A stretch of DNA of 62,147 bases, filler included, from Dicyema japonicum (lineage: Eukaryota > Animalia > Dicyemida): assembly GCA_011109175.1 (NCBI GenBank). It is 7 parts of 7 records of this genome, joined end to end, with 100 filler letters (N's around TTAATTAATTAA, not from the genome) between each part and the next. Parts side by side here need not be neighbours in the genome. Positions count along the whole stretch, not along the records: positions 4,847 to 29,383 come from RDEW01000143.1; 6 more parts are not named here. One strand, given 5' to 3'. Shown here piece after piece: positions 6,291-48,191 of this stretch (the stretch's first letter is position 1; every line of letters starts with the position of its first letter). The position numbers and the translations under genes were made by a program. The notes beneath the pieces were generated by a model. The model was not told where the DNA came from. It saw nothing but the letters and a program-made list of their open reading frames with translations, and searched no databases.

Positions 6291-6933
6291 TATAAATAAA
6301 CATAAAGAAATTCAATTTTATTACAAAAGTTTAACGAATTACTCTAATTAGGGATTTTAGCACTTCTTTTTCTTGTTCAGAATTTTTAATTCTAANNNNN
6401 NNNNNNNNNNNNNNNNNNNNNNNNNNNNNNNNNNNNNNNNNNNNNNNNNNNNNNNNNNNNNNNNNNNNNNNNNNNNNNNNNNNNNNNNNNNNNNNNNNNN
6501 NNNNNNNNNNNNNNNNNNNNNNNNNNNNNNNNNNNNNNNNNNNNNNNNNNNNNNNNNNNNNNNNNNNNNNNNNNNNNNNNNNNNNNNNNNNNNNNNNNNN
6601 NNNNNNNNNNNNNNNNNNNNNNNNNNNNNNNNNNNNNNNNNNNNNNNNNNNNNNNNNNNNNNNNNNNNNNNNNNNNNNNNNNNNNNNNNNNNNNNNNNNN
6701 NNNNNNNNNNNNNNNNNNNNNNNNNNNNNNNNNNNNNNNNNNNNNNNNNNNNNNNNNNNNNNNNNNNNNNNNNNNNNNNNNNNNNNNNNNNNNNNNNNNN
6801 NNNNNNNNNNNNNNNNNNNNNNNNNNNNNNNNNNNNNNNNNNNNNNNNNNNNNNNNNNNNNNNNNNNNNNNNNNNNNNNNNNNNNNNNNNNNNNNNNNNN
6901 NNNNNNNNNNNNNNNNNNNNNNNNNNNNNNNNN

Positions 6934-7268
6934 TCAAGACCGTTTGCAGACTGTGGAGGTGGAGAAAAAAAGGAAGTATGACTTTCTTGCAAACGAGATG
7001 GGGCAGATGCTTGGTTTCAAGGTCCTCGTTATTCCAAGAGTAATGATGTGGAAAGGAATTGCAAAAAAGTACCATAAGGGTTATCGAGAACAGTTAAAGG
7101 TAGATAGGAAGCTCCAGGCCTATCTACAGTCCACTGTTTTAAAGCGGACCCTAGAGAGCCTGACACTGGAGTATAGGAGGCAGAGCCCTGAGATGCCATA
7201 TGGACAGAGGGTTCAATTGTACAAGGCGCTCTCGGAGTTGTTTCAGCAACCAGAATCGAACCTGCCTG
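6934..7268 (+). mobile_element. C-terminal restriction-like endonuclease region of an R4/Dong-like non-LTR retrotransposon
   Basis: QTVEVEKKRKYDFLANEM...VLVIP.VMMWKG...YH...LQAYLQSTVLKRTLESL shows the K..KY and P.V..W.G motifs of RLE elements. Confidence 0.7.
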
Positions 7269-7539
7269 NNNNNNNNNNNNNNNNNNNNNNNNNNNNNNNN
7301 NNNNATATACATCCAAATGACAAATAAGAATCTTTATAAGAACGACGAACTGATTTACCCATAAGCACGTTGATGCGCACGTTATTAAAAAATTTATAAA
7401 TAATGGTTAACCAATGTAAATGTCATTTAATGTATAATAAAAAAATAATTATTTTAATTTTAGTAATTATTTTAATTCGTTTATCTTTTTAAATTAATTA
7501 AGTCAAAAATGTATATAAATTTATTCAAATTTGTATTTG

Positions 7540-7590: not shown

Positions 7591-7979
7591 NCAGGATGGC
7601 TTTAAGTCATCATCTCGAGAGCCATTGTCAGAGGAAACAGGATGAGGATCTCTATATATCGTGGATAGTTCATTTTTGACGAGGATCTCTATATATCGTG
7701 GATAGAAATAGAAGTCCAAGACCCATTAGAGATTTCATCGATGACTATCTGAATATTGGAGATATAATATTTGTTTTGAGACAAAATAAATGTAAAAAGT
7801 ATCTCTAATTGATGCCCCTTAAGAGATAAATGATGCCACTCAAGAAATATTGTTATAAAAATTAATCTTCGAATCCAGATTTTCGAAAACTAATAACAAA
7901 TCATCAATCTAATATTAAAATATACAATTTACTATTTTAACATTGTGATTATAAAAAAGTGTGATTCTAAAATTTCCAC

Positions 7980-8542: not shown

Positions 8543-9208
8543 AAGATGTAAAATGAACACGTCGATGTGTATAATTTGGGTCACTTTTTTTATTAATGAA
8601 TTTATTTTTAATAATTTGAAACAAATAATATTTATTTTAATTTTATAATTATATTTATTTTCATGAATTCATTAATCAAAAAACTCCTATTCATACTGCA
8701 ATGTTAACCGTCTTTAAGAATTTCATGGTATTTTATCGTAATCCATCATAAGTCATTCTGTTTTGTCGGAATCTTTAATGATCGAAGGAAAATTTAATCA
8801 GCGATATTCGTAAAATATCAAAATAACTATTTTATTACACAATCGAATAAATATTTGTTGTCAATTGACTTACTGTGTCTTTTAATTGAAAACGTATTTC
8901 TTTTAAATCGTCAGGAAAAATGGGATCTCAATTATGAGACTGTCTACTACTTGTTAACTGTTTGTTTTTTGTATTAAAACGTTTTTATTCAAAAAATATT
9001 AATACTAGGAGAATATTCTGAAGTGAATTGAATATAAAAATTAAAACCAGCATTAACAAATAATACAGATATTCATAAATAGGTGGCATAAAAGGAATTC
9101 AAACGAAAATCGTTAATTCATAGATGAATTTATTACTAAACTTTATTTTAAGTGTAAGAGCTGTAATTTTAATTAATCCAAGACATATCTAAGACATTGA
9201 AAATTTTC

Positions 9209-9258
9209 TTGACTTTTTTTTTGTTTGTGAGTCCCAGAAGACAATTCAGTTCCGCAGA
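9209..9258. repeat. Left half of ~86-bp structured element split by the LINE
   Basis: TTGAC-T-tract-GTTTGTGAGT...AGACAATTCAGTTCCGCAG matches 48104-48158. Confidence 0.7.
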
Positions 9259-12200
9259 AACGAAACCAAATTTATTCCACAGTAAATAAGGAGTTAGTTT
9301 AAGGATATTTAAACGTGTCCGCCTATGCGACCTGGACACTTCCGATGCATCCCGTCTCCATTTAGTCTCCTTCTATCGTTGGATCCCATCGATCCTTTTC
9401 TCTACAATATTTTGACAGTTGTTAGAATCTTGTCTTCTTCAGTACTGAGAGCATCACAAAGCCTTTTCCCCAAAGCCAACTTTATTGCCGACCTTCTGGT
9501 TTTTCCATGAGTAACATAATTATTTCTCTTTGGCGAGAAAAAACCATGCTTCGCATCCATATAGCAGCTCCGGAAGAATGATTCTCATGAAGATGAACAA
9601 GAAAGTTTCCAAGTTTAAAAACAACTTTCTTTTACATAAGAGTGCTTGAAGCGCCTTCTTCCTTCTTTGTCTAATGTCCTCCATGAAGGAACCATTCCCT
9701 TCGATTACTATCCCGAGGTAGCGCAGTAAATTTACTTTAGGAATCTCTAGTGAGTAAGGCTGCGTCTGATGCCTCCTTAGGCGACTGATTCGTAGAGAGC
9801 TGGACTTCTCCGTGGACAATCTTATCCCTCTTTTGGTGCACCAGTCCTGTACTTGTTTAATGAATGACATGATTCTTTTTTCCGAGAGAGTTGATTTCCC
9901 GGATGTATCCGTGATCAGAATATCATCAGCGTATATCAATAATCTGGTGTTTATATTCGGTGGAGTTGGAATGTCTGATAGGAATATGTTGAATAGAAAT
10001 GAACTCAAGACAGAACCCTGCGGAACTCCCCTTTTCAGAATGATGTCTTTTGACATATTTGCTCCAACACGTACTTGAGAAGTCCGTCATGTTAGGAAGT
10101 CCTTTATCCACATGAAAAGTTTCTTTTGAATATGAGCAGCTGCTAGCCTTGATAGGAGTGCTTCGTGGCACACACTATCAAAAGCCTTGGACAGATCCAA
10201 ACATACCAGGTTAACTAGTCTTTTGAATTCCAGACCTCTCATTACCATTGAATGCATCTGGTAGATGCAGTCCGTGCATGGATTTCCAGGTCTGAAGCCA
10301 CATTGTTCTGCGAGGAGGAAACCACTTTCTTCTATGTGGTCGTTTAGCCTTCTGAAAATAATTCGTTCGATAATCTTGGAGATCAAACAGATGAGGCTTA
10401 TTGGCCTATAGCTGAGTGGGTCCCTCCTCGATTTTCCCGGTTTCAGTATCATTCTGACAATAGAAGATTTCCAGCGTTTTGGGACATGACCATGATGAAT
10501 GCTTGCATTGAATAAATTCCTCAGTATGGGAAATAGAGCCTCTGGGGCTTCCTTGAACAATCTCATGCTTAGATGGTCAAATCCAGGAGCGTTAGCCTTG
10601 CTTTTCATGATTGCAGTCATGACTTCTTCCGTAGTTATTTTTACTTCAGTATCTTTGAAATCGTCCAAAAAGTAAATTAAAATTTCACGTGAAGAATCTA
10701 ACATCTCCCTCGGAATAAGCTCCATCGGGTTGACCCCCCGAATGCTGTCCAGTTGTTTCTTAAAAATATCTGGGGCTTCTTCCATAGAACATAGTCCACC
10801 TTCTGGCTTAGTCAAGGAGAGTTTTATGTCAATCCTTCTCTGACCAGTTATTCTTTTGTAGAACTTCCAGAACGAGGGGTCTTTGTTGTTTAGTTTGCTT
10901 GCCTCTAACCTCAAACATTGTTCTTAAGATAGTCTTGTTCCTTCTTTAATGGCTTTCTTGATTATCTTCAATTGTCCGGTCAGTGCAATCCGGTCTATCC
11001 AGTCCACACATCTTCTGAGTTTGGTCCTCAGACAATTCCTTTCATTGATCAAAGATAATGTGGAACGCGAAAGACTGATGCTCTTTTCATGATTGGTACT
11101 TTGAGGATCTCCTCCTTGCGTAAAGCATTAAGTATGTCTCCATCATGATGGAGAGTTCATTGTCTATGATGTCGATATCACTTCGGGAATAATCTTTATC
11201 CTTCCAGTCTTTGAGGTTTCTTGAAATGTACCTTCTGTAGTGTTCCCAGTTTACTTTTGTTAGGTCGTAATAATGTGGAACGTGTAAACACAGAGTCCAT
11301 GGAGTCTGGAGCTAGGTTCAATTACATCTCCTGTGGTATATGGTTACTCCCGATGTCCCACATGATCATCGGCTTCTCTACATAAGTGTAGAGTAGTGGT
11401 AACACCAGGAACACCCAAACATGTCTCCCCCGTAGTGCAAGTAATGATTCGATTTTTCCGATGTCAAAATCTCAAAGCCAGTTTTATCACTCAATTTCCT
11501 CAGTCTGATTCCATCATCGATAGTACCGAGGCATCTATATTTAATGTTCTTGGCATTTAGATCACCCACTAGGATAGACATATCGTTTTTGTGAAGAATT
11601 CTTCAATTTCTGCGGAGCACTTTCTATGGTCATTTGAATACATTCCACAGACGTGTATCCAACGGCCACAGCATCTCACCTCGACGGAAACAAATTCACA
11701 GTGTGTATTCATTATAATTTTTGTCTCACGTATATGTAGAACTTCACTGTGAACAATGTGGTTCCAGTACTAGCTTCTGCACCTTCGACCCATGGAATTT
11801 CTATAGAATTGTATCCCTGTAGCATTGTGGTGTTGGTCTTTTTCACTTTGGACGATAGTAGTAGTGATAGGTCATGACGTCTTTTCTTTAAGGATCGGAC
11901 GTTTACCAGCACTATCTTCAAGTTTCTTTTCAATTTTCTTGTTGGTGGCCCGGGCTCTCCATGGCCAATGGTTCTTTCATGGAGGACATTAAACGAAGAA
12001 GGAAGAAGACGCTTCAAGCACTCTTATGTACAGGAAAGTTGTTTGTAAGCCTCGAAACCTTCCTGTTCATCTTCATGAAGATCATTCTACCAGAGCTGCT
12101 ATATGGATGCGAAGCATGGTTTTTCTCTCGCCAGATATTGCGTAAATCCACCCCGAGTGTGCTGCTTAGTTCCTTCAGTCTTGATATTATTTCCTTTAGT

Positions 12201-13282
12201 TCTTTTGTAATACTCCCTGATAACTTTTCCTTCGGTAGTCAGGCTGATTCTCGTGGAAAATGAGCAACTTCGTACATGTTAGTTCTTGCGCCAATAACCC
12301 TTTTTTGGGCTGGCGGTTCCACTTTCTTGTTTATAATATCCGTCTGTTTCTGTTCCCTGTTGTCGATTCGGGAGTTTGATTTTCGTCTAGCCTCCATGAA
12401 TACAGGGCATCTTTCGTATCTTGCGCCGTGTCTTGTTGACCCGCAGTTAGCACATTTTCGTTCAAGAGTTGGATCCGCATCACACTTGATGGTGTCGTGT
12501 TTTCCCGCGCAACGGAAGCATTTTTTCTTTTCCGTGCACTGGTATGCAAAGTGGCAGATTTGCTGACAGCTGTAGCAGATTGGTGGTCCTCTTCGTATCC
12601 ATTCACAAGAAATCTTGTTCGTCCCGATGTAGAAGCCACATCTAATTAGTGATGTAGCCTCCGACTTCATATTGATCGTGGCCTTCGCCAATGGCATGGC
12701 CTGCGATCCTCTGGTCATTCAGGTAACCTTCGCGACTGAGGGAGCCATCTCCTGAAGGTAGTCCAAGAGGTCGTCCTCTTTTACCCAGAAGGGGAGGTTC
12801 CTGAGGACAATCTCAGACGGTTTTGTTGAGATTGTCTTGAAATGGTGATTCTCATTACCAAAGGGGCAGGTCTCATTCACCGCTTCTATAAAGGTGGCCA
12901 CATGGGAGATATCCAGGAAATCCAGTCGGAAAGAGCCCGGTCCTCTGTGGCTCATCCTCATAGATCCGTATAGGTCATAGTATTGTAAAAATTTGCGATT
13001 TTAATCGCATTCATAGTAGAATTCACTGTAATCAATATAGTCCTGTTCTCTGAATAATCAGATTTCATTAGTTCATCCGTATATTTAGACATTTCCTTGG
13101 GATCGTATTTTGTAATGACATTCGCTGGTTTAACAGGTTCTGCATTATGCGAAGTCATGTTCTCTAGAGAGAATGATTCAGCAGTAGCACTTCCGGAAGA
13201 CGAGAAGAGCTTTTCACTTTAGTGGTTTTTACTGGTTTTACTACAGATCTCTTCGTGTTAGTTTTCTGAACCACTTCTGAAC
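9259..13282 (-). mobile_element. Near full-length I/Jockey-group LINE (gag-like ORF1 + APE-RT ORF2, frameshifted) with 12-bp target-site duplication
   Basis: ORF1 starts at 13158 and has three zinc knuckles (CYSCQQICHFAYQC, CFRCAGKHDTIKC, CANCGSTRHGARYERC). APE motifs: LKIVLVNVRSL, ILVGDLNAK. RT motifs: YRPISL, LDLSKAFDSVCH, GVPQGSVLS, YADD, YLGI. CAGTTCCGCAGA occurs at both 9247-9258 and 13283-13294. Confidence 0.92.
11967..12133 (+). repeat. Inverted ~170-bp copy of the LINE's own RT C-terminal segment
   Basis: Encodes NGSFMEDIKRRRKKTLQALLC...LPELLYGCEAWFF. It is the reverse-complement homolog (roughly 85% identical by eye) of 9531-9696. Confidence 0.9.
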
Positions 13283-13330
13283 CAGTTCCGCAGAGATGAC
13301 ACGCTCGCTGATAACGGCGTTACTCGTCAA
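13283..13330. repeat. Right half of ~86-bp structured element split by the LINE
   Basis: CAGTTCCGCAG...CTGATAACGGCGTTACTCGTCAA matches 48148-48191 (CAGTTCCGCAG...CTGATGACGGCGTCACTCGTCAA). Confidence 0.7.
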
Positions 13331-14654
13331 CTTAAATTTTATTTTTGTTATAATCAGGGCGATTTTTCTGACTTTATAAATACGAAATTTTGACTTAAAA
13401 ATTGCAATCTTCGTGTCCTTATTCGAGAATTTTTTTTATGATAAAAATGCACTGTTCTCGATCCTTTTTGGGGGCTTAAACTCGAGAGATATCTTGTTTG
13501 GTTGTTTGGGGACAAACAGAGAAGACCTTGTTTTAAAGGACATGTCTGTGTCTTCTGGGTTTTATGTTGTGATTTCTTCGACCCCGAATCAATATTCTCC
13601 AAGTGGCTCAGATTATTTGCGATTGGCGTTAATATCGGAGTTTGATCATCAATTTTTGGAACGACCGATTACGCTCAATATTGGTAGTTATTATTTAGCA
13701 ATTCTTTGTAAACTCAACCTAGCTCGTTTAGAAGTCAAGCTTGCTCTAGTCGCTATGATCTGACAAGTATAAACTGAGACCACTAACAAAAAGCATTTTA
13801 TATATTTGAACGTTTTGGGAATTTTTGTAATTTGGAGTCTTCCAAGTGGGATCTTGAGAGTTCTAGTGAATCTAATTGTTTTTTAATCGTACCTCGAAAC
13901 ATATAGTCGAATAAAGTCTATTTGGTTAACAAGAATTCTCATTCGACAACAAAAATTGTTATTGCTTTTTGAAAAGGAAACAATGTTTGAAAAACGATCT
14001 ACGTCGATGTTCTGATCCCCATGACCGTATACTCATGGAGCTAGAAATTATGATGATCACGCAAGAAATACGCAGATTAGAAAAAGTTAAGAAAAATAAT
14101 TTTGGATAGCTCAGTGGAGCGAATTGTATCGAAAGAAACCCAAACTTTTTGGAAATAATAAATAACCGAACGTAAACCCAGAAAAGAAATTTAAATGTTG
14201 CAATGTCATGAGAGGTCTCCTGTATGTTTGCAAGAAATTCCTAACATGTGTGGGAATGAACTCTCTAAAAAACATCTGGTTAACTTTGATGAGCGACTGT
14301 CTCGTTTGGCAGTAGCGCTCTAAAACAAAAGCTGGAAAACGTAATTATTTTTTTTCCTTAACGTCATAGCTCTATAAATAATGGAGAAGTTGAAAATGTG
14401 ATAAAATGACTAAAGACAATGCTCTGAATAGACAAGATTGCTATTTGTTTTTCAAGGAAGCACTCCAGGTACTTTATGAATATCTGGGATCTCTACGTGA
14501 GTATGATGAATTATATAAATTCGGCTTATTTCGTAACGTCAAAAATCATATTCTTTTTGTTATCTTTAATTTTTAGTTTGCCCTTTTAGTTTCTTCTCTT
14601 AAGCAGGCGCATTGCCAAGAACATCTGCGCACATTTATTTAAATTCTCCACTTC

Positions 14655-15790
14655 CTATAGCCTGGCATCCAAAACGTTTGCAACATGTTCACTGTTAAAT
14701 TTTCTGATTTTTCTCTGTATCTTAGTACGTTCCGACTGTAAAAAGCATTTCCTGTTTGTGTTCGTCATGTTTTCTAGCGATAGTCGAAAATCCTTCTTTT
14801 TTGCAGTGTGGGAACATCGGGGTGGCCTTGCTCGGTACCTCTCAATGTGTTCGTTTGCAGCCATGTGAATTCTTTCCATTGTATGCGTCCAAATGACTCC
14901 CGGTAGAAGGCCTGTCTCTATTGCTATTAAATAATATTCCATAGATGCTCGATAGATATTTTGAGTGAAGTGTGAAAAACATAATCTCTCGACTAGGTAT
15001 CTTTCCCGTATGACCTGAGATGGCTTTGTTCCTGAAGTGCGTGCATAGTGACTTGTAATATCAAACAGGGCCACGACGATCTTGTGGACGCTTTCCCGAC
15101 GGCCCTTCCGTATGAGATCGAGTCCCGTAATAGTGTTCTATTTTTTGTCGGCAAAGAATGTAATCAATCTGATTGTAAATCATACATGGCCTCCTGATTC
15201 ATTTCTTCTGCAGCTCGTCCAGGTAGTCTTATGTCATGCAGCATGCGCAAACGCAGTGTTACACAGGAATAGACCAAATGCCCGGCAGAAATTTATCAGC
15301 ACAGCCCCCGGCAAGTTCCTGATCCCTCTTCCGTGTCTTCCGATAGTCGACTCATGTTCCCGACGTACTCCTGCTTTAGCATTCCAGTCTCCGGCAATGA
15401 GGACTAGAAAAGACGATTCCAGTTCGGCATATGTCCTCGACAGCTGCATGTAGAAAGCGTCAAGTTCGTCCGAATCTTTGGCGACGCATCCATTGTGGAG
15501 TGCATAATATAATTGAGATAAGGGCCCTCGATGAGCGTTTGACCACAACCCGTATTTGAAGTATGCTGATTCTGTTGTTAACACTCTAACACCGATGTAT
15601 CCTACGAACAATTTCTTGTGCACGGCAAACTTCTGTCCATAGTGTCTTGATGACAATGATAGTAAAATGAGTCTATAGTCTCCATGTAGCTCGTCCATTC
15701 CATCCTGTACTTTTGTCGCTTGTAGGCATCCCACGTCTGCACCATATCTCCCCGGATCTGAAAATAACAGGTTTCTTCTCACTCCATGCT
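14655..15790 (-). mobile_element. RTE-clade LINE 5' fragment (AP endonuclease and linker)
   Basis: DVGCLQATK, ELDAFYMQL, LIAGDWNAKAG and IGRHGRGIRN..G..LINFC...L.LCNTAF are typical RTE APE motifs. Confidence 0.85.
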
Positions 15791-15849: not shown

Positions 15850-16160
15850 CATTTAAAAAGAGGATTTGGGGAGGCTAGACTCGTTTCACAAAAATCATCT
15901 TAGAAACATAACTGGAATGTCCTGGCCATCCAAGATCTCGCGTAGTGGACTGCACAATAAGTGTGATTGGACACCATTAAGTCACAAGATCATTAGCTCT
16001 CGTTGGAAATTTTTTGGAAGGCCGTGAAGAAAACATTGGCATCTGGTGACGATCTAGACTCACTGATAGACCTAGCTAAGAACTAAAGAGCTTGGAACAA
16101 CCTAACTAACTCTCTTATATTCTTTGCTGCACATGCGGGGCTATAGATATTATGGCTCTC
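15850..16160 (+). mobile_element. RTE-like LINE 3' end, family A
   Basis: Ends TTTGCTGCACATGCGGGGCTATA...GTGCTAATAATAA; homologous to 43030-43160 and 45720-45865. Confidence 0.7.
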
Positions 16161-16569: not shown

Positions 16570-17800
16570 CCCAGGATGAAAGAGTTCACGGGCCTCCGAA
16601 TAAACTATCATCGACAAGATCTAGAAATTCGCTTATCACACATTATTGAAGAATGGAAAACCGAAGATCCTGCTTCATACAGGCTCATCTCCTTAACGTG
16701 AACACTATCCAAAATACTTTAAAAACTCGAACTCTCGGTTATTATTCTGATTCTTCTTCAACCTAGGTTTCTACATTGATTTCGTTTGGGAGATCGACCA
16801 CAACACACGGTGTCAAAAGTTATTGCTGATGGTTCTACTGCTTTTCCATCTCACATGCGTACAGCAATAGTCTCCATTGACATTGGTAAAGTATTCAACA
16901 CAGTTCTTAAAGATACACCAAAACTTAAAACTGTAGTTGGTTAACTTTTTCTCAGGAAAATGTGGAATAGTTAACTGCAACCTATCAGATAAGAATCAAG
17001 ATACTTCCAAACGGATTGTCCAGAGTTTTCCGATCACTTCGACACTTTTCAAAGTATTCCTTCATGACAAAGCAACAAACATGGATAAAGATTCCTGGTT
17101 ACTATTCTAATCATCACAAACGAAACCGTTAGACTCTAATAAACAGCTGAAAGTGCAGAGCTCAACGATTGGTAGATAGCCAACCGCCTTTCATATTGAC
17201 CACAAAGTCGACATACACTTCATTCACTTCAGAAGAACTAAAAAACCAGAAGTTTTAATCATATCTTTTCAGAAATATGTAACAAGTTATTAGCGGCGTA
17301 GGACAAGTTGTTGAATTGCACTTTTGAAATACTTTCTCACTAAAGGTCTACAAAAAGATGAACGTTGTAAGTCCACTTGTTCGGAAGACCCTTTTAAATT
17401 TGGATTACAATTGCGACAGTCTACCAGCGACGGTACTAGATTAGTTCATGTTGCGTAGAGACTCAAGCCTTGCCACAAGTAAAATGAGAAAATGACCAAT
17501 TCGAACTCGAAGATGTTAAATGTACGAAATTTCTTTAGTTCAAAGCTTTGTGTGTCCGAGTTTTCAGAGTCTTCCATTTAACGATAAGACGTCACCACCA
17601 ATACATTTTCACTATGGCCAAAGCGGTGCAGCCTGAAAAATCAACAGCAACGCCACCCTCCTATACTGTCCTGTTGCTACAAACTCCTATAGTCCATCTA
17701 ACCTTCTCCCTCTCAAGACAACTCCCAATCCATGTCCCCGTAGAATGGTTTACGGTCGTTATGGAGCATAACTACCGGACTAAAAATCACCGAAATCAAA
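16570..17800 (+). mobile_element. Heavily degraded LINE RT
   Basis: DPASYRLISLT*TLSKIL and TAIVSIDIGKVFNTV, with many stops. Confidence 0.6.
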
Positions 17801-19049
17801 TATAAAAGCAAATCTAACAAAAAACAGTAAAAGACTAATTTTCATTCAAAAAAGACTTCATTTTCACAATACTATTTTCACGGTCCCATGGAGCAACATT
17901 ATTATTGAGATCAAACGTATTCTAAATGACCACAAAGCCAACCTGAGAGGCTCTTTCCATCAACTCATTCAGTTCATTGTCAGTAAGGTCTTTATATACG
18001 TCGCTTTCATCATCACACAACAGTGCCAAGTGCTCGGAGATCTCAAAAATTGACGAAATTGAATCCTTAAGTGAGACAGAATGCTACAAATGATCGACGC
18101 ACAGAGTCGTCCATAAACTTCATAGGAATATTGTAGAAACACTCGCTAAAGTCACTCCAACCTTCCTCGGAATTGGTCTTATTCCGTTACTTAGATTAAG
18201 TACCTCGATTTTAAGGGGGAGTAAGTTTTTTTCAGATTATCATGATCTTCTTCCGTTAATTCAACCACTATGAGAATAAAAAAACCAAATTTACTTTCTT
18301 TTGTGTGATCCTCTGGGATAAATCCAAAGTACTCGTCATAATTATCTCGCATAATGAGCTCAACAAAATACTAAAAATTAAATACACTCCCGCTAATTTA
18401 TTTTAGATATTAATTATTAATTTAGAAAAAATTTATTTAAATTGTTTATAAAGATTTCAGATCGATTGCTTCTCTTTAAAGATTTCGGACAAAAACAATG
18501 GGCAAGGTTTTCTGCGTTTCTTCAATGAACCAGTAATTAAAATTTCAATTCCAATAATCTATTTTTTAAATTTTATTAATAATTGTTTCTGAAGTCACTA
18601 ATTCGGATATACGCTGCATTATGTCTTTCTATCGGCCAGTTCTCTTTCCAGTACTTATGCGAGGTCAATGTGGCATTGTTAAAGGAGCTTTGTTTTTTAA
18701 CTAACTTTTACTTTATTAAAAAAATGTAAAAAGGGTATTTATTTTAGGTTTCTTACACCAAGTCCTGCCATAGTTTGGAGTCTCCTCTGCGATCTCAGAC
18801 CACTCTTTTGGTTTATTTCATGCTGCGACATACGAGTGAAAAATAGCATCTCTCTTTTAGTCTGCAATTTTTTTCTATCACTTCTCTGATCGACAATGAT
18901 AACAGATCGTCGTCCTCATCTAACGTCTCGCCGAGCGTTTGTGTAGGGCGATCTTGATCCTTGCTCTTCGATTTTTCAACAAGCAAGATCAAACGTTCCT
19001 TGTATGCAGTGTAATAGCACTATGAGTCTTGTGAAATTTGGCTGAGGTG

Positions 19050-19620
19050 TCCTTCAGGGTTCAGTGCTCAGTCCTCTATTATTCAACATTATAATGAGTG
19101 GGTTGCCTTGCCCAGAAAACCAACGTATAGAAATCTTGATATACGCGGATGACGTCATAATTTATGATGTCTTTTTAAACCCTTTGGTATCTGAAAAAGG
19201 TTGAAGACGTACATGGACTAGATCTAACCTAAAAAACTCGATGCAAGACATATTTCGGAAGAAGACTATGAAATACCTTGGCCTCCTAATTGACGAAAGA
19301 GGTAATTTTATGAAACATGCCAAAATACAAAAAAACGCTACGAACGCTTTGTTCTGGGTTATAAAATTAAAGCTCGAGTCAGAGACCTTTGTTTATGTCT
19401 TCAACTCCGCAATACTTCCTAGAATGTTACATGGTTTAGAAGGATGGTACGACTCATAAAGGAGAAATTTAATTTTAAAGAAATTTGAGAAAACGCGTAA
19501 TTTTGACCTAAAGCTTGCTTTCGGGATAAGTCCACGTATGCAATTCCCCTATGGTTGAAAGGAAAAATGTGCAAAGTTAACGGAACTATCGAAAATCTTA
19601 TTTGAAATTTCGTAAACCGC
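19050..19620 (+). mobile_element. LINE RT C-terminal fragment related to the 9.3-13.3 kb element
   Basis: LQGSVLSPLLFNII, LIYADDV, KYLGLLIDERGNF and ILPRMLHGLEGW parallel the 9520-10056 ORF. Confidence 0.8.
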
Positions 19621-20869
19621 ATTAAAGTATCTGCTACTTACTTTCAGAGACGACCCTGTGTTTAGAGATTTCTTGGGGAGACTTATCTTTTCATAATACT
19701 TCCTTTATCACTTAATTTCCAGTGTTTACTTTATAATAACTTATTTGACTGGTGCCCACGTGATTTTCTATAGAGACACCATCCTCAAGTAGGATGAAGT
19801 CAACCAAAGACTTACAGACTCCGATCTCGTACTTCACGGAAATCACTTTTTCCTCAGTGGCATAATCATCTGACACGACATCTTTGAGAGTATCCACCAT
19901 TCTATCCATTTCTTTATAGTCCTTGTTACTTAAGGTCCAAAGAAATTCGTTGCCATTTTTAGTGACTTGGAACATGGAATTTGCTTTATCCAGTTTTCCA
20001 TTGTACATCCACGTTATATTGAGATTCCTCGGAGAATCGACCTTTTCCCTTGCATTTAACTTTAGAAAAATGACTTTGAGAGATTATCACATCCCCACTA
20101 TTGACATAAATCTTGACTGATCTCAACGTATCGAGAATAACTGGTTGATCTGCAAATTTGAATTCTAGCAACCATAAGACGAGACAGTGAAATGTTGCCT
20201 GTACTCTATTAGCGGTTCTTTATTCCTCACAGGAGTAGACAAATTCAAATATCTCTTATATGTTTGTTTGGATTTGATTTCCAGGAAGTCGGAAGTAGAA
20301 TGACACAAATTGGTGGTCTCTTTCGTACAAGATTTGGTCATAATCCTTCAAATTTATCAAACCGCATTCATTGTTGCAAAAATAAGCATGGCGAGAAAAC
20401 GAGAGAAGTATTCAGGTGTAGTTTCACATCCCTTCCGTGTGGGAAGATCGTGATTAACTCTGAGCACTGGAAAACCTCATTGATTCCACTCTATTTGAAT
20501 TTGATGAGATCATTTCCATTTATACATATATAATTGAAGGTAGAGTCATTTATACAAAATATTTGAAGTACACGTAAATCTCCACGGCAACCAGTATTGA
20601 GAGAGAGGAAATGTCCCGTGGTTCCGATTAGAATCCATTATTAGCACCAGATTATCGATATTGCGTTGCCTCTCACGATTGTAACGGAGATCAACTGGAG
20701 AACCCAACCGGTCTCACGTTCTTCGTTACTTTTAGTTTAGCTAGCATCCAAGTTTCCTTAGAAAACATAGCGATTTCACACTTATTCCTCACGTTGTCTC
20801 GACCACAATGGGATAGAACGCGAATCGGTCTCGTAGCGCTTCGTATTTCTTCTCCTTAGCCTTCATCGT

Positions 20870-21530
20870 TTTTTCCGCGACATGGAGTGTGTCTATGACT
20901 CCCCGCTTCCTATTAGAAAGACTTTTTCAATACTTGGAGTCATCCTGGATACCCTACTCACATTCACCCATCAAGTGGACCTAGTAACCGCGAGGATTCA
21001 AAAGAAAATTGGAATTCTCAAGGCTTTCACTCACTTTCCAGTATCCTCCTGCCCATCCTCCAGTATCCTCCTGCCCATCGCTAGAGCTTCTACCTAGTAT
21101 CGAGTACGCCTGTGCTGCATAGATTGGCCCTTTATTAATATCGGCACAGAGCAAGCTGGAGGTTTTACAAAATCGATGTCTAATGATTTTATTAAGATCG
21201 ACAAAATGATGATTCTATTGAATCGTTGAAAAAGACGTCCACCTCGTTACTGCGGAGAACAATAAACGTCCACCAATCGTGGAATACCTTACGGAACGTA
21301 GCTGAGACTTCCTCAAGATTGCAAAGTTTCCTGACCATCCCCTCGGACCGCACATCAGATTATATATGGACGCTTGCCCGAGAAATGAGAAGTAACCTTC
21401 CTCGCTGTGGAGATTAATCCAGGACTTCAGAACTAATAGCAGGAGAAGGACTGGTGTAAACACCGGGCTCACTAAATCAGAAGATAACATTTATCTTCTT
21501 TCTCGTGATTTCGGGGTTAATGAAATAAAT
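20870..21530 (+). mobile_element. Degenerate Jockey-like LINE 3' fragment
   Basis: ILGVILDTLLTFTHQVDLVTARIQKKIGILK, and ...IEYAC.AW-like residues downstream. Confidence 0.65.
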
Positions 21531-25339: not shown

Positions 25340-25777
25340 AATGGCAGGCTTCCCGGCAGTACTAAAGCCTGTGGGATTGAACCGCGGAGATGGGAAAAGA
25401 CCGGATGAATTAACTATCTTTCAGTTCACTGAGGGAAAATCGCTCGTATGGACTGCACTGTTGTGGATTCTTTCTCGAACTCGATGATACTCAGTTTGGC
25501 GCAGTCTGTTGGATCGGCAGCTGATCTGGCCGATAAAATCAAGACTAAAAAATATGGCGAAATTGGAAACCGCTACTGTTTTGTACCGGTAGCAATCGAG
25601 ATTTCTGGTGCGGCCGTAAGTATTACAGCCTCATTCTTAAAGGAAATCCGGGTGAAATCGGCCCACCGTAAGAAAAACGTGCGGCGAGCGGTCTGGCTGA
25701 GGCAACAAATTGGGATTGCAATTGTCCACGGAAACGCTTACTCTGTAATGTCAGCAGCCGCTCTTCCCGATAGTTAA
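25340..25777 (+). mobile_element. CRE-clade LINE 3' fragment (RLE domain)
   Basis: [36 protein letters not shown] and IGIAIVHGNA. Confidence 0.85.
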
Positions 25778-27189: not shown

Positions 27190-27885
27190 AAGCCAACACC
27201 GACTTGCCTGTCTAGTCACAGGAAGATGCAAATGGAGTGGCACATGGATCAATACTCTTCCTGTCGGACGCGCTGGGACCCACATTGATGAAGATATTGT
27301 CTGCATCGGTATTTCCATCAGACTTGGACTCAAGATTCCCCAGACTTCAGGTGGCGGTGCGGTGGTGCCGTCGACTGTTATAGACATTATTCTCTTTCTT
27401 GCCGAAGAAGTGCAGGACGATTCCCAAGACATAAGGTGATCAACGGAATTCTTAAGCGAACCTTGGAGTCAAATGGATACCCTTCCATATTTAACTGATT
27501 GGCTTGACAGATGATACGGAAAACAGCCGGACGGAATTAAAATTTTTCTATTCGAGGTGGGGAAGCCATTGGTATGGGATACCAGGTGGATCGACCCCTT
27601 TGTTCATTCAGCATTGTCGGGAGCGCGGTAGACACACTGTATGCCCGAGAAAAAACAATGAAAGAAAAAGAAAAAATAAAAAGCGTTACACGATCTGTTC
27701 ATGTTCTGCCTCATAGTAGTTGAAGTAACAGAAGGAATAAGCGGGAAATCGCTTCGCTTCTTAAAGAAACTGGAACGCCTAGCTATGCTAAAAAGCAACG
27801 ACGTCGTGAAACTAGGTGGCTTCTCTAGTTAATCTCTGTTGCAATCGTAAGAGGCAACGCAACGTCGATTATGTTGGCGGGGATC
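27190..27885 (+). mobile_element. CRE-clade LINE 3' fragment (degenerate Zn finger + RLE)
   Basis: SGTWINTLP..GTHIDEDIV.IGISIRLG, WDTRWID, KRKNKKRY and ISVAIVRGNA, with frameshifts. Confidence 0.8.
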
Positions 27886-28839
27886 ATTATTTAATTGATT
27901 TTTGTGTTTTTGATTAATATAAATTTATTCATTTTTGATTTATTCATTTTAAAAATAATTCACTTTTGGCTTTATAACATTAGCAGTGTTTAACCTCTTG
28001 CAAATGTCTTCGATAAATAGACCATCAATTTTCTTAGAATTGTTTAGAACACCATAAATACAGTTTTTGGACAAAATCACTTTTTCCTTTATTCTTCAAT
28101 GTCTTTAGATTCCTTGGTATGGAAAATTATACATTTCTTTCTTAATTGACCTACGTCCTCCGAAAGTTGTGTATGGTTCAATGGTATTACAATTGTAGTG
28201 GACGATTTTCATAATCAAATTCAACGCGAACAATAAAAAATTTAATTTTGGACAAAAGAAACAAATCAGACATCAGCAACCAAGTGAGCACTGCCGATGG
28301 CATTTCACTTAACCAACTCTCCTCAGAAGGATCTCCTAGGCTTGACGAGATTGCGTTTTCTATCTCTCAGAGAACATCTCTGCCGACATGCGCGTCTACA
28401 TCAGCAGTCTCGAACACATTTGGGACGATGAGAAACGGCCCCCAAGCGCAAAATATTTATCCAGCTTTCTCTGTTCGGCAGAGTAAGTGGCCGGAGAATC
28501 CAAGTTTTATTGGGTATTTTATTTGTCAGGAAAAAAGGCAATCATCTTCCAAAAATACATTCAGCCTGAATCCTTACAAGAATTAATCAAAAACAGAAGA
28601 ATTAGAAAGAAAGAGTCAAATTTGCATCCACATAGACAAAATACAAAGTAATCCAAAAAACAAATAAAAAGACTAATAAATCGAAAAAATCCAAATTCCG
28701 TCAAAAAAGCCCGCTTAAATATTTTCTCAATGTACGATTCTAAATGTGGTAATATCAACAAATCTTTGCGTATTAACGAAGGCCATAATTGTCCCCTCCC
28801 ATTTAATATTTTTTATTTAAATGAAATGTCTACGAAATG

Positions 28840-29383
28840 TTCGAGACAAAAACATCATGCAGAGTATCCAATTCTCGCAAGTGCGGGATTCGATGTTCTG
28901 TATGTGTTGGTTACTACCACATAGGTTGTGAAAAACTATCCAAGAAAATTGCTCGATCACTTCCCTCGTGGTCGTGCCGGTCGTGCCGTCTGGAACTCAC
29001 TAAAATTGAACCTCGTGATCATTTTGTGTCATCATCATCTGTATCAGATCTTCTGGAAGCCATGTCTCCGGAGGATTTTCTGGTTTTATTATCAAACACG
29101 CGACAGAGGAAGATTATCCCTGTCAGGATCCCCAAGGCTTCCCGGATCTCAATTGCTTCTGCCCTTTCTTCTTGCATTGAGAAAGCTGTGTCCAATGGCT
29201 CGAAAAAGGATTGGATGGTTCTTTTCTCTTTCCCTGTCCTGGCTATGGGGTTAGAGCGTAAGCCTGCCCCATCTTCTCGGAAACCCTCTCTATCCCATGT
29301 CCTGAAGAAACGTGTGAGTGCCTTTATGGATTCATGGGAGTCCCTGGCTGAAGAATTATTTGTTTCACCAGTTGATTACTTCC
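28840..29383 (+). mobile_element. 5' part of a CRE-like retrotransposon ORF with N-terminal PHD finger (cut by contig linker)
   Basis: CRVSNSRKCGIRCSVCVGYYHIGC...WSCRSC is PHD-like. It is followed by RIPKASRISIASALSSCIEKAV...W..LFSF, recalled as the pre-RT region of CRE-like elements. Confidence 0.65.
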
Positions 29384-48103: not shown

Positions 48104-48191
48104 TGACTTCTTTTTTTTTCTTGTGTGAGTGTCCTTTCTAGACAATCCAGTTCCGCAGTGAGTATCCACTGATGACGGCGTCACTCGTCAA
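48104..48191. ncRNA. Uninterrupted copy of an unidentified ~88-bp structured element (candidate small RNA, SINE or MITE)
   Basis: Left part matches 9209-9258 and right part matches 13283-13330. It contains three short hairpins and TGAC...GTCA termini. Confidence 0.45.

Follow-up and report, generated by a model that had tools for sequence, protein, structure and literature searches.

A non-LTR retrotransposon (LINE) that lies between two copies of one short sequence, within DNA that recurs elsewhere without it, raises the question of whether the element was directed to this site, shares its origin with the flanking DNA, or inserted into an older repeat in the ordinary way. The locus, at positions 9209–13330, belongs to a window of 62,147 nucleotides (filler included) from Dicyema japonicum. 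The favoured answer, with a probability of roughly 0.7, is an ordinary nested retrotransposon insertion, in which an older and abundant repeat (hereafter the host repeat) received a LINE in its tail.

The LINE is bracketed by an exact 12-bp direct repeat, CAGTTCCGCAGA, with one copy beside its 3′ end (9247–9258) and the other beside its 5′ end (13283–13294), neither being assigned to a strand. When up to one mismatch is allowed, the window contains two and only two matches to this 12-mer, whereas 100 shuffles give an expectation of 0.00. Immediately beyond the repeat the two copies no longer agree, with T/C on the left and A/G on the right, and the duplication is therefore exactly 12 bp long. 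These observations bear out the earlier note, made from the sequence alone, which had described a perfect 12-bp duplication around a LINE of approximately 4.0 kb. Outside 9209 and 13330, the two sides have only the 7-mer AAAATTT in common, which is not significant in AT-rich DNA. On the minus strand, the 3′ terminus of the LINE, ending in AAATTTGGTTTCG, and the flank word TCTGCGGAACTGAATTGTC define the 3′ junction of the LINE with the host repeat. Between four and five of eight words sampled from 9205–9310 were present in the runs searched, and those words need not span the filled junction.

Unoccupied versions of the site occur in public contigs from the same organism. In four runs, all from one sample, one contig per run joins 9254 to 13295, skipping 4040 positions. 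In these contigs AGT replaces CAGA, at least 57 letters are present on each side of the joint, and the sequence reaches at least 13351; they represent an unoccupied paralog with one diverged copy of the target, CAGTTCCG followed by AGT. At least 16 further contigs depart from the locus at 9257 into TGATGAAACACTGATGAAGGCGTCACTCGT, which is similar to the sequence from 13295 onwards, and at least five carry the left-half sequence TGTTTGTGAGTCCATTCCCAGAAGACAATT immediately ahead of 13283; these counts, and that of eight given below, are lower bounds taken from the 24 departures listed of approximately 1,700 loose-end clusters. The 12-bp repeat is thus accompanied by empty sites elsewhere, and the empty joint, together with the left-to-right paralogs, establishes that the LINE truly inserted into a multicopy sequence and generated a target-site duplication (TSD). 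An APE-type LINE inserted in a multicopy small element or RNA gene had been proposed earlier. The insertion, its 12-bp TSD, and the multicopy target that is unoccupied elsewhere all stand, but a small element or RNA gene as target is not supported, given the empty Rfam and tRNA searches and a repeat that exceeds 86 bp (both described below).

The inserted element spans 4,024 bp on the minus strand (9259–13282) and is apparently full length but dead; its assignment as a LINE comes from a reverse transcriptase (RT) domain, apurinic/apyrimidinic-type endonuclease (APE) motifs, a CCHC-bearing ORF1 and the bracketing TSD. The RT domain occupies 9544–10650 on the minus strand in one frame, with an in-frame stop at 10087–10089. 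Pfam RVT_1 matched its two halves at E-values of 1.5e-13 and 1.8e-14, tblastn aligned RT relatives through the entire interval in a single frame, and the best solved structures in a PDB search were human L1 ORF2p (6.6e-12) and R2 proteins. Together with 22 RT homologues from a protein search, these matches identify the domain as a non-LTR-type RT. It is at most 37% identical to any entry of the protein collection, which lacks Dicyema japonicum's own copies, and the nearest relatives are 30–37% identical; the protein search, a cluster look-up, the Atlas and the contigs of two relatives yielded nothing closer. In one relative that is 36% identical, an RNase H-bearing gene is called directly downstream of the RT, whereas the Dicyema LINE has no RNase H.

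Minus-strand positions 11378–11950 hold remnants of a putative APE, distributed over at least three frames. ORF translations contain the motifs LKIVLVNVRSL and ILVGDLNAKN, and their cores, VNVRSL and GDLNAKN, stand at the expected place N-terminal to the RT, as read by eye in a domain that is split by frameshifts. Pfam Exo_endo_phos_2 reached only E = 0.074 on a 67-residue piece of this region, a PDB search with the N-terminal APE piece gave no match, and tblastn with the ORFs upstream of the RT from the relatives' contigs gave no match either. The gag-like ORF1 (12239–13158, minus strand) was read from translation and contains three CCHC knuckles at 12407–12577, with the patterns CX2CX4HX4C, CX2CX3HX4C and CX2CX4HX6C; Pfam returned no match on ORF1. 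The 3′ end of the element reads AAATTTGGTTTCGTT, and the copy at 9259–13282 shows neither poly(A) nor a simple-repeat tail.

The LINE family is present in very high copy, with 7,140 public contigs of the same organism matched in run X1, and the contigs include an internally deleted copy with a joint from 9400 to 12559. Comparison with these contigs brings out the defects of the copy in the window, which is dead through in-frame stops, frameshifts and an inverted patch. A frameshift near 12960 and an in-frame stop at 12719–12721 both interrupt ORF1; at position 12721, essentially all contig depth is G (31 contigs, run X1), whereas the copy here has A. At 11588 and 11750, an extra base accounts for over half of the family depth in the contigs, so these two frameshifts are absent from the family consensus. 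At the ORF1/ORF2 boundary, positions 11967–12133 (plus strand) hold an inverted, 167-nt copy of the LINE's own RT C-terminal segment (9531–9696), to which it is 90% complementary. Other family members have approximately 14 nt (GGTCCACCATTCTT) at this site instead, with joints from 11967 to 12141. The examined piece consists entirely of transposon debris, and other RT/APE remnants are found at 15234–15782 and 16660–19460.

The sequence that received the LINE is itself a repeat, orientated on the minus strand. Its left part, 9209–9258, comprises the 3′-terminal ~50 nt and ends in an A-run (a T-run at 9214–9222 on the plus strand) of only 9 nt, followed by GTCAA ahead of the boundary at 9209. The left edge appears as a rise in contig depth from 8.5k at 9152 to 34.8k at 9213, where depth is the summed word depth over contigs at least 80% alike, is not a copy number, and may include spurious alignments drawn by AT-rich flanks. 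GC content changes near the same edge, from 22–27% left of 9100 to approximately 34% in the left part of the repeat. The right part, placed by depth and GC, begins at 13295 and runs to at least 13600: summed depth is 32–52k, 19–28 contigs cover 13334, 13355 and 13500, and GC stays at 35–36% up to ~13900. A unit bounded at 86 bp, as described in the earlier note, is contradicted by this depth and contig coverage, which run on past 13330, and by the empty-site joint contig. Pfam searches of flank ORFs and a coding-potential scan detected no coding signal in the right flank. In the left flank, a scan for bacterial-type promoters and terminators, whose model is irrelevant to a eukaryote, found nothing.

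Because its 3′ end lies at ~9210 in an A-run and its body extends rightward from 13295, the host repeat appears to be the 3′ end of an older, abundant, poly(A)-tailed retroposon, either a SINE or the 3′ region of a LINE. The A-run, the step in depth and GC near 9209, and the rightward continuation all fit a retroposon of this type; self-BLAST and a repeat search of the examined piece aligned no second copy of the host repeat or of the LINE family. Exact-pattern scans of a metagenome collection with the LINE 3′ end and with the left half-unit gave 0 matches each. The 86-bp ‘empty homolog’, which the earlier note places at 48104–48191, beyond the examined piece, is best read as a host-repeat copy with a truncated 5′ end: it would share only the last ~86 nt of the repeat and would thus match end to end without homology in the flanks.

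On the favoured reading, the nested insertion arose as follows. The older, non-coding repeat would have been in place on the minus strand, with its 3′ end at ~9210 in the A-run and its body rightward from 13295. A LINE from the high-copy family, with a three-CCHC ORF1, an ORF2 containing APE and RT, no RNase H and no poly(A), would then have integrated by target-primed reverse transcription (TPRT) at a point 38 nt upstream of the A-run. From the position of the TSD, the first nick would fall on the plus strand of the window between CGCAGA and GATGAC, and the second on the other strand 12 nt away, producing the 12-bp duplication. The LINE copy subsequently decayed, acquiring two in-frame stops, several 1-nt frameshifts and the 167-nt inverted patch.

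A sequence-specific LINE would be expected at the same position in its copies, and the contigs indirectly indicate otherwise. In at least eight of them, the sequence to the left of 9269 differs from that of the locus, and these 3′ flanks are mutually unlike (agreement 0.6) and AT-rich; De Bruijn contigs tend to end at repeat borders, with few crossing in either direction. Over the left half-unit, depth is 34.8k at 9213, below the 76.6k of the LINE 3′ end (9308–9461). The minimum, 17k, falls at the LINE 5′ end (13158–13311), as expected for 5′-truncated copies. The divergent flanks and the lower depth of the left half-unit argue against both the strict sequence-specific targeting and the RIME/ingi-type partner that the earlier note had raised, and the LINE was probably not targeted to this site.

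A softer form of targeting, in which the LINE endonuclease or the TPRT step favours a site around CGCAGA|GATGAC in the host repeat without being absolute, is unlikely. It predicts that a disproportionate share of LINE copies occupy one position in the host repeat, as Tx1L does in Tx1D. APE-type LINE clades with target specificity include R1 and Tx1 (PMC4640811). The target here is multicopy, with many empty copies, and the depth of 34.8k at 9213 far exceeds that of the ~17 listed empty contigs, so that many units could be occupied; nonetheless, the flanks entered from the LINE 3′ end in at least eight contigs, and the depth deficit of the left half-unit, run counter to the prediction. The last bases of the LINE match the target bases at the putative nick in five of eight positions (AACGAAAC versus GATGACAC), but about as much agreement arises by chance in AT-rich DNA. 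The distant RT relatives, one of them with the downstream RNase H-bearing gene that is missing from the LINE here, also weigh against a preference, and in a transposon graveyard such as the examined piece nesting is expected by chance. For the LINE family as a whole, a real though non-absolute leaning towards a single position in the tail of one particular older retroposon family is similarly improbable.

In the RIME/ingi pair of trypanosomes, each side of a LINE carries one half of a short non-autonomous element. Applied to Dicyema, such a pairing would have the true LINE extend from ~9210, at an A-tail, to at least 13330, with the 12-mers as internal direct repeats; the ‘empty’ copies would then be non-autonomous derivatives with the interior deleted, consisting of the 5′ and 3′ ends of the LINE joined at the 12-mer by recombination or template switching. 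The locus resembles RIME/ingi in that the flanking halves, once the LINE interior is taken out, combine into a short repeated sequence. The A-run at 9214–9222 lies on the strand of the LINE, an element that otherwise lacks poly(A), the right flank recurs at a depth similar to the LINE's, and the 9400-to-12559 joint marks an internally deleted copy. However, other copies diverge at the proposed LINE 3′ end (9259–9269) and not at 9210, and the depth of 9209–9258, which should at least equal that of the adjacent LINE 3′ region, is 34.8k–48.9k versus 76.6k. Depth drops toward 13158–13311 and climbs again past 13312, a profile that fits two separate repeats better than one element, and the flanks have a GC content of 34–36%, against 39–49% in the LINE body. 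The half-units therefore do not behave as the LINE's own termini with TSDs outside them. In contrast to RIME/ingi, the Dicyema junction has an insertion-type 12-bp duplication at which family homology stops, and the flanking repeat runs beyond the half-unit. A pairing of this kind is very improbable.

Searches for a functional RNA in the target were negative. Rfam gave no match in the whole examined piece at E ≤ 1 and only chance-level matches for each flank alone at E ≤ 10 (E 2.6–9.8, far under gathering scores), and ARAGORN found no tRNA in the examined piece; by these tests the target is no known RNA gene, and it is not a simple repeat or microsatellite. An undescribed small RNA gene, or some other functional multicopy element in place of transposon debris, has only a slim chance of being the target: the sequence is multicopy, somewhat more GC-rich than the DNA around it and has two TGATGA motifs in the paralog consensus from contig loose ends, but no Rfam family or tRNA emerged even at relaxed thresholds, the reconstituted 86 nt are predicted to fold at only −15 kcal/mol on either strand (a value with no shuffled baseline), the repeat is unbounded at 86 bp, and the paralogs differ by many substitutions and indels (agreement 0.68–0.94), as decaying repeats and not a conserved gene would. 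The TGATGA motifs also suggested a C/D-box snoRNA or a hammerhead, both of which were rejected for lack of a terminal stem and of any Rfam match.

The nested insertion can be placed among known systems by its likenesses. I/Jockey-type elements have an ORF1 with three CCHC knuckles and an ORF2 with APE and RT. The Dicyema insertion resembles an ordinary APE-type LINE insertion of this kind in its domain order, CCHC pattern, 12-bp TSD, apparent 5′ truncation within the family and decay of the copy. It differs from ordinary APE-type LINEs in that the copy has neither a poly(A) or simple-repeat tail nor RNase H, and in an RT so distant from known proteins. In Xenopus, Tx1L within Tx1D forms a composite, a LINE within another element. 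The Dicyema locus shares with this composite, and with LINEs of the R1 and Tx1 clades, an APE-motif LINE at a defined position in a multicopy sequence that is also found unoccupied. In Tx1L/Tx1D-type systems, however, essentially all copies lie at one site, whereas the Dicyema LINE has at least eight contig variants with an unrelated 3′ neighbour and a 3′ depth that exceeds that of the target.

As it stands, the locus is a well-resolved case of a transposon within a transposon, set in near-total transposon debris, and it carries little wider weight. Its use lies in repeat annotation: it fixes the termini of a high-copy LINE family exactly, together with the length of the TSD, and it locates the 3′ end of another repeat family. 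A preference of the LINE for this site would be of interest, since few APE LINEs other than those of the R1 and Tx1 clades are known to be target-specific. If the LINE does prefer its site in the host repeat, it would represent a ‘transposon-in-transposon’ safe-harbour strategy like that of Tx1L in Tx1D, none being known from this lineage.

Pattern and repeat searches of the piece analysed (4847–29383) located the 12-mer CAGTTCCGCAGA at 9247–9258 and 13283–13294. With up to one mismatch and on both strands, these were the only two matches, against 0.00 in dinucleotide-preserving shuffles. The bases bordering the two 12-mers on the outside differ on both sides, so the target duplication is exactly 12 bp. 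The enclosed element is a minus-strand LINE of 4,024 bp (9259–13282). Its family was surveyed in contigs from one sample of this species (four runs), aligned to 9000–13600 at 80% likeness or more. In each run, one contig joins 9254 to 13295, replaces CAGA with AGT and extends at least 57 letters to either side; it is an unoccupied paralog with a single, diverged 12-mer copy. Furthermore, at least 16 contigs in run X1 (at least ten in run X3) track the left half-unit, 9209–9258, to 9257 and then enter TGATGAAACACTGATGAAGGCGTCACTCGT, a diverged form of the sequence from 13295 on. At least five contigs have TGTTTGTGAGTCCATTCCCAGAAGACAATT abutting 13283. These three sets of contigs bear out the proposal of the earlier note that a LINE with its target duplication lies in a repeated sequence that is empty elsewhere. 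The note's observation holds wherever the piece analysed allows it to be checked; the homolog it places at 48104–48191 lies outside that piece.

The locus is probably an ordinary nested LINE insertion (probability about 0.7). At least eight X1 contigs match the LINE to 9269 and continue leftward into flanks unlike the studied locus and unlike one another (agreement 0.6), which are AT-rich as native DNA is; these are LINE copies at other sites. Summed word depth, which is not a copy number, was 34.8k at 9213 in the left half-unit and 48.9k in the bin 9154–9307, and reached 76.6k in the LINE 3′ region (9308–9461). As the evidence consists of summed word depths, the best-supported loose ends and De Bruijn contigs, which end at repeat borders, it leaves a low probability for a quantitative, non-absolute insertion preference for this site. 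Strict site specificity and a RIME/ingi-type SINE partner, both raised earlier, each need a half-unit depth at least equal to that of the LINE 3′ region, and the lower value argues against both. The contigs with unrelated 3′ flanks also speak against specific targeting. Depth falls to a minimum at the LINE 5′ end (17.2k in 13158–13311) and is higher again in the right flank, which fits two separate repeats better than a single one.

The target is also larger than the 86-bp element originally envisaged, since beyond 13330 the summed depth remains 32–52k and 19–28 contigs cover 13334, 13355 and 13500. The contig joining 9254 to 13295 itself extends to at least 13351. The left boundary of this host repeat is marked by a depth of 8.5k at 9152 versus 34.8k at 9213, and GC content rises from 22–27% left of 9100 to 34–36% in the unit and in 13300–13900. 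An RNA-gene target finds no support, as Rfam gave no match across the whole piece at E≤1 and only chance-level rows for the flanks alone (E 2.6–9.8, scores far under gathering), and a tRNA scan of the piece found none. Insertion into a multicopy sequence is the part of the earlier interpretation that stands. Read on the minus strand, the unit terminates in ...CACAAACAAAAAAAAAGTCAA, and a search of the right flank for coding signal found none. We infer that the host repeat represents the 3′ terminus of an older retroposon of poly(A) type, oriented like the LINE, and the 86-bp copy elsewhere, which lacks flank homology, would be a 5′-truncated copy of it. Self-comparison of the piece yielded no second host-repeat copy.

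Translation of the LINE predicts an ORF1 on the minus strand from an ATG at 13158 to a stop at 12239, with three zinc knuckles at 12407–12577 (CX2CX4HX4C, CX2CX3HX4C and CX2CX4HX6C) and no family in a Pfam search. The start of translated ORF2 carries the endonuclease (APE) motifs LKIVLVNVRSL and ILVGDLNAKN. The APE domain is spread over several frames; its Pfam Exo_endo_phos_2 match is weak (E=0.074), and its N-terminal piece had no match in a PDB search. The identity of the reverse transcriptase (RT) segment is clear from its sequence: single-frame alignment to relatives places it on the minus strand from 10650 to 9544, across one in-frame stop at 10087–10089, its two halves match Pfam RVT_1 (1.5e-13 and 1.8e-14), and its best solved-structure matches in PDB are human L1 ORF2p and R2 proteins. 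By our reading of the translations, the ORF2 frame appears to reach approximately 9315 by frameshift, which would leave a 3′ UTR of about 55 nt ending ...AAATTTGGTTTCGTT, without poly(A). The nearest proteins in a collection of 5.8 billion clusters are unnamed and 30–37% identical. For one of these relatives, the gene called immediately downstream of the RT bears an RNase H domain, whereas the studied LINE has no space for one.

The LINE family is very abundant, with 7,140 contigs aligned in X1. The copy studied here is dead, with some defects that most family members lack. Position 12721 is G in essentially all contig depth (31 contigs, X1) and A in this copy, creating an in-frame stop at 12719–12721. 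An additional base at 11588 and at 11750 is carried by over half of the depth, and this copy shifts frame at both positions; some single-base frameshifts could be assembly errors, given the draft quality. At the ORF1/ORF2 boundary, 11967–12141 stands in place of about 14 nt (GGTCCACCATTCTT) in other members, and 11967–12133 is an inverted 167-nt copy of the LINE's own RT-C-terminal segment 9531–9696 (90% complementary). This patch stops short of the LINE 3′ end and so is not a simple 5′-truncated nested copy; a template switch or repair patch is possible. A contig joint from 9400 to 12559, one per run, suggests an internally deleted family member elsewhere in the genome, missing about 3.2 kb.

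Because the LINE lies on the minus strand and the plus strand at its 3′ junction reads CAGTTCCGCAGA followed directly by AACGAAACC..., the priming nick would fall on the plus strand between CGCAGA and GATGAC. The second-strand cut would lie 12 nt from the first, on the minus strand between GGAACTG and AATTGTC. Such a nick site is unlike the T-rich L1-type site, and the LINE end matches neighbouring target bases at five of eight positions, near chance.

The piece is transposon debris, in which chance nesting is expected. An APE-like minus-strand ORF at 15234–15782 (LIAGDWNAKAG; Pfam Exo_endo_phos only E=0.058) and, on the opposite, plus strand, a stretch at 15880–16060 resembling by eye an RTE-type LINE C-terminal tail are probably what is left of other LINE families. 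On the plus strand, a second, different LINE has left RT remnants at 16660–16905, 18920–19192 and 19241–19459 (tblastn, 28–50% identity), the last an ORF resembling the studied LINE's RT C-terminus at the protein level only. The inverted-repeat pairs 25270–25331/27109–27170 (62 nt, 90%) and 25833–25894/27033–27094 (63 nt, 83%) are nested, span about 1.9 kb and contain a 109-aa ORF (25448–25777) with no Pfam match; they may represent a foldback element, a TIR element or a single repeat present as two head-to-head copies. A dispersed repeat family has two inverted copies in the piece (20651–20895 and 27629–27872; 247 nt, 73% identity). A plus-strand ORF at 28837–29383, ending at the piece edge, has a weak PHD-finger match (E=0.011) and might encode the N-terminal part of ORF1 from another retroelement. 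The AT-rich left flank at 9000–9144 is itself repeated (summed depth 64k), all 15 of 15 X1 contigs disagreeing with the window at positions 9102 and 9105; at least seven contigs depart at 9144 into TGTTGCTTTTATGTGCTTCA, so that position appears to be the end of a third repeat family. Assembly gaps occupy 6396–6933 and 7269–7304, with single Ns at 7591, 26069 and 27003; long ORFs over 6357–7075 were rejected as artefacts of N runs.

Tx1L in Tx1D is the nearest precedent for a LINE within another mobile element. Target specificity among APE-type LINEs is found chiefly in the R1 and Tx1 clades (PMC4640811). Those systems, like Tx1L/Tx1D, are defined by an insertion site common to essentially all copies, whereas the indirect evidence for the studied LINE points to copies at differing sites. 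An ordinary nested insertion would have little significance, unless LINE junctions genome-wide were enriched at this site.
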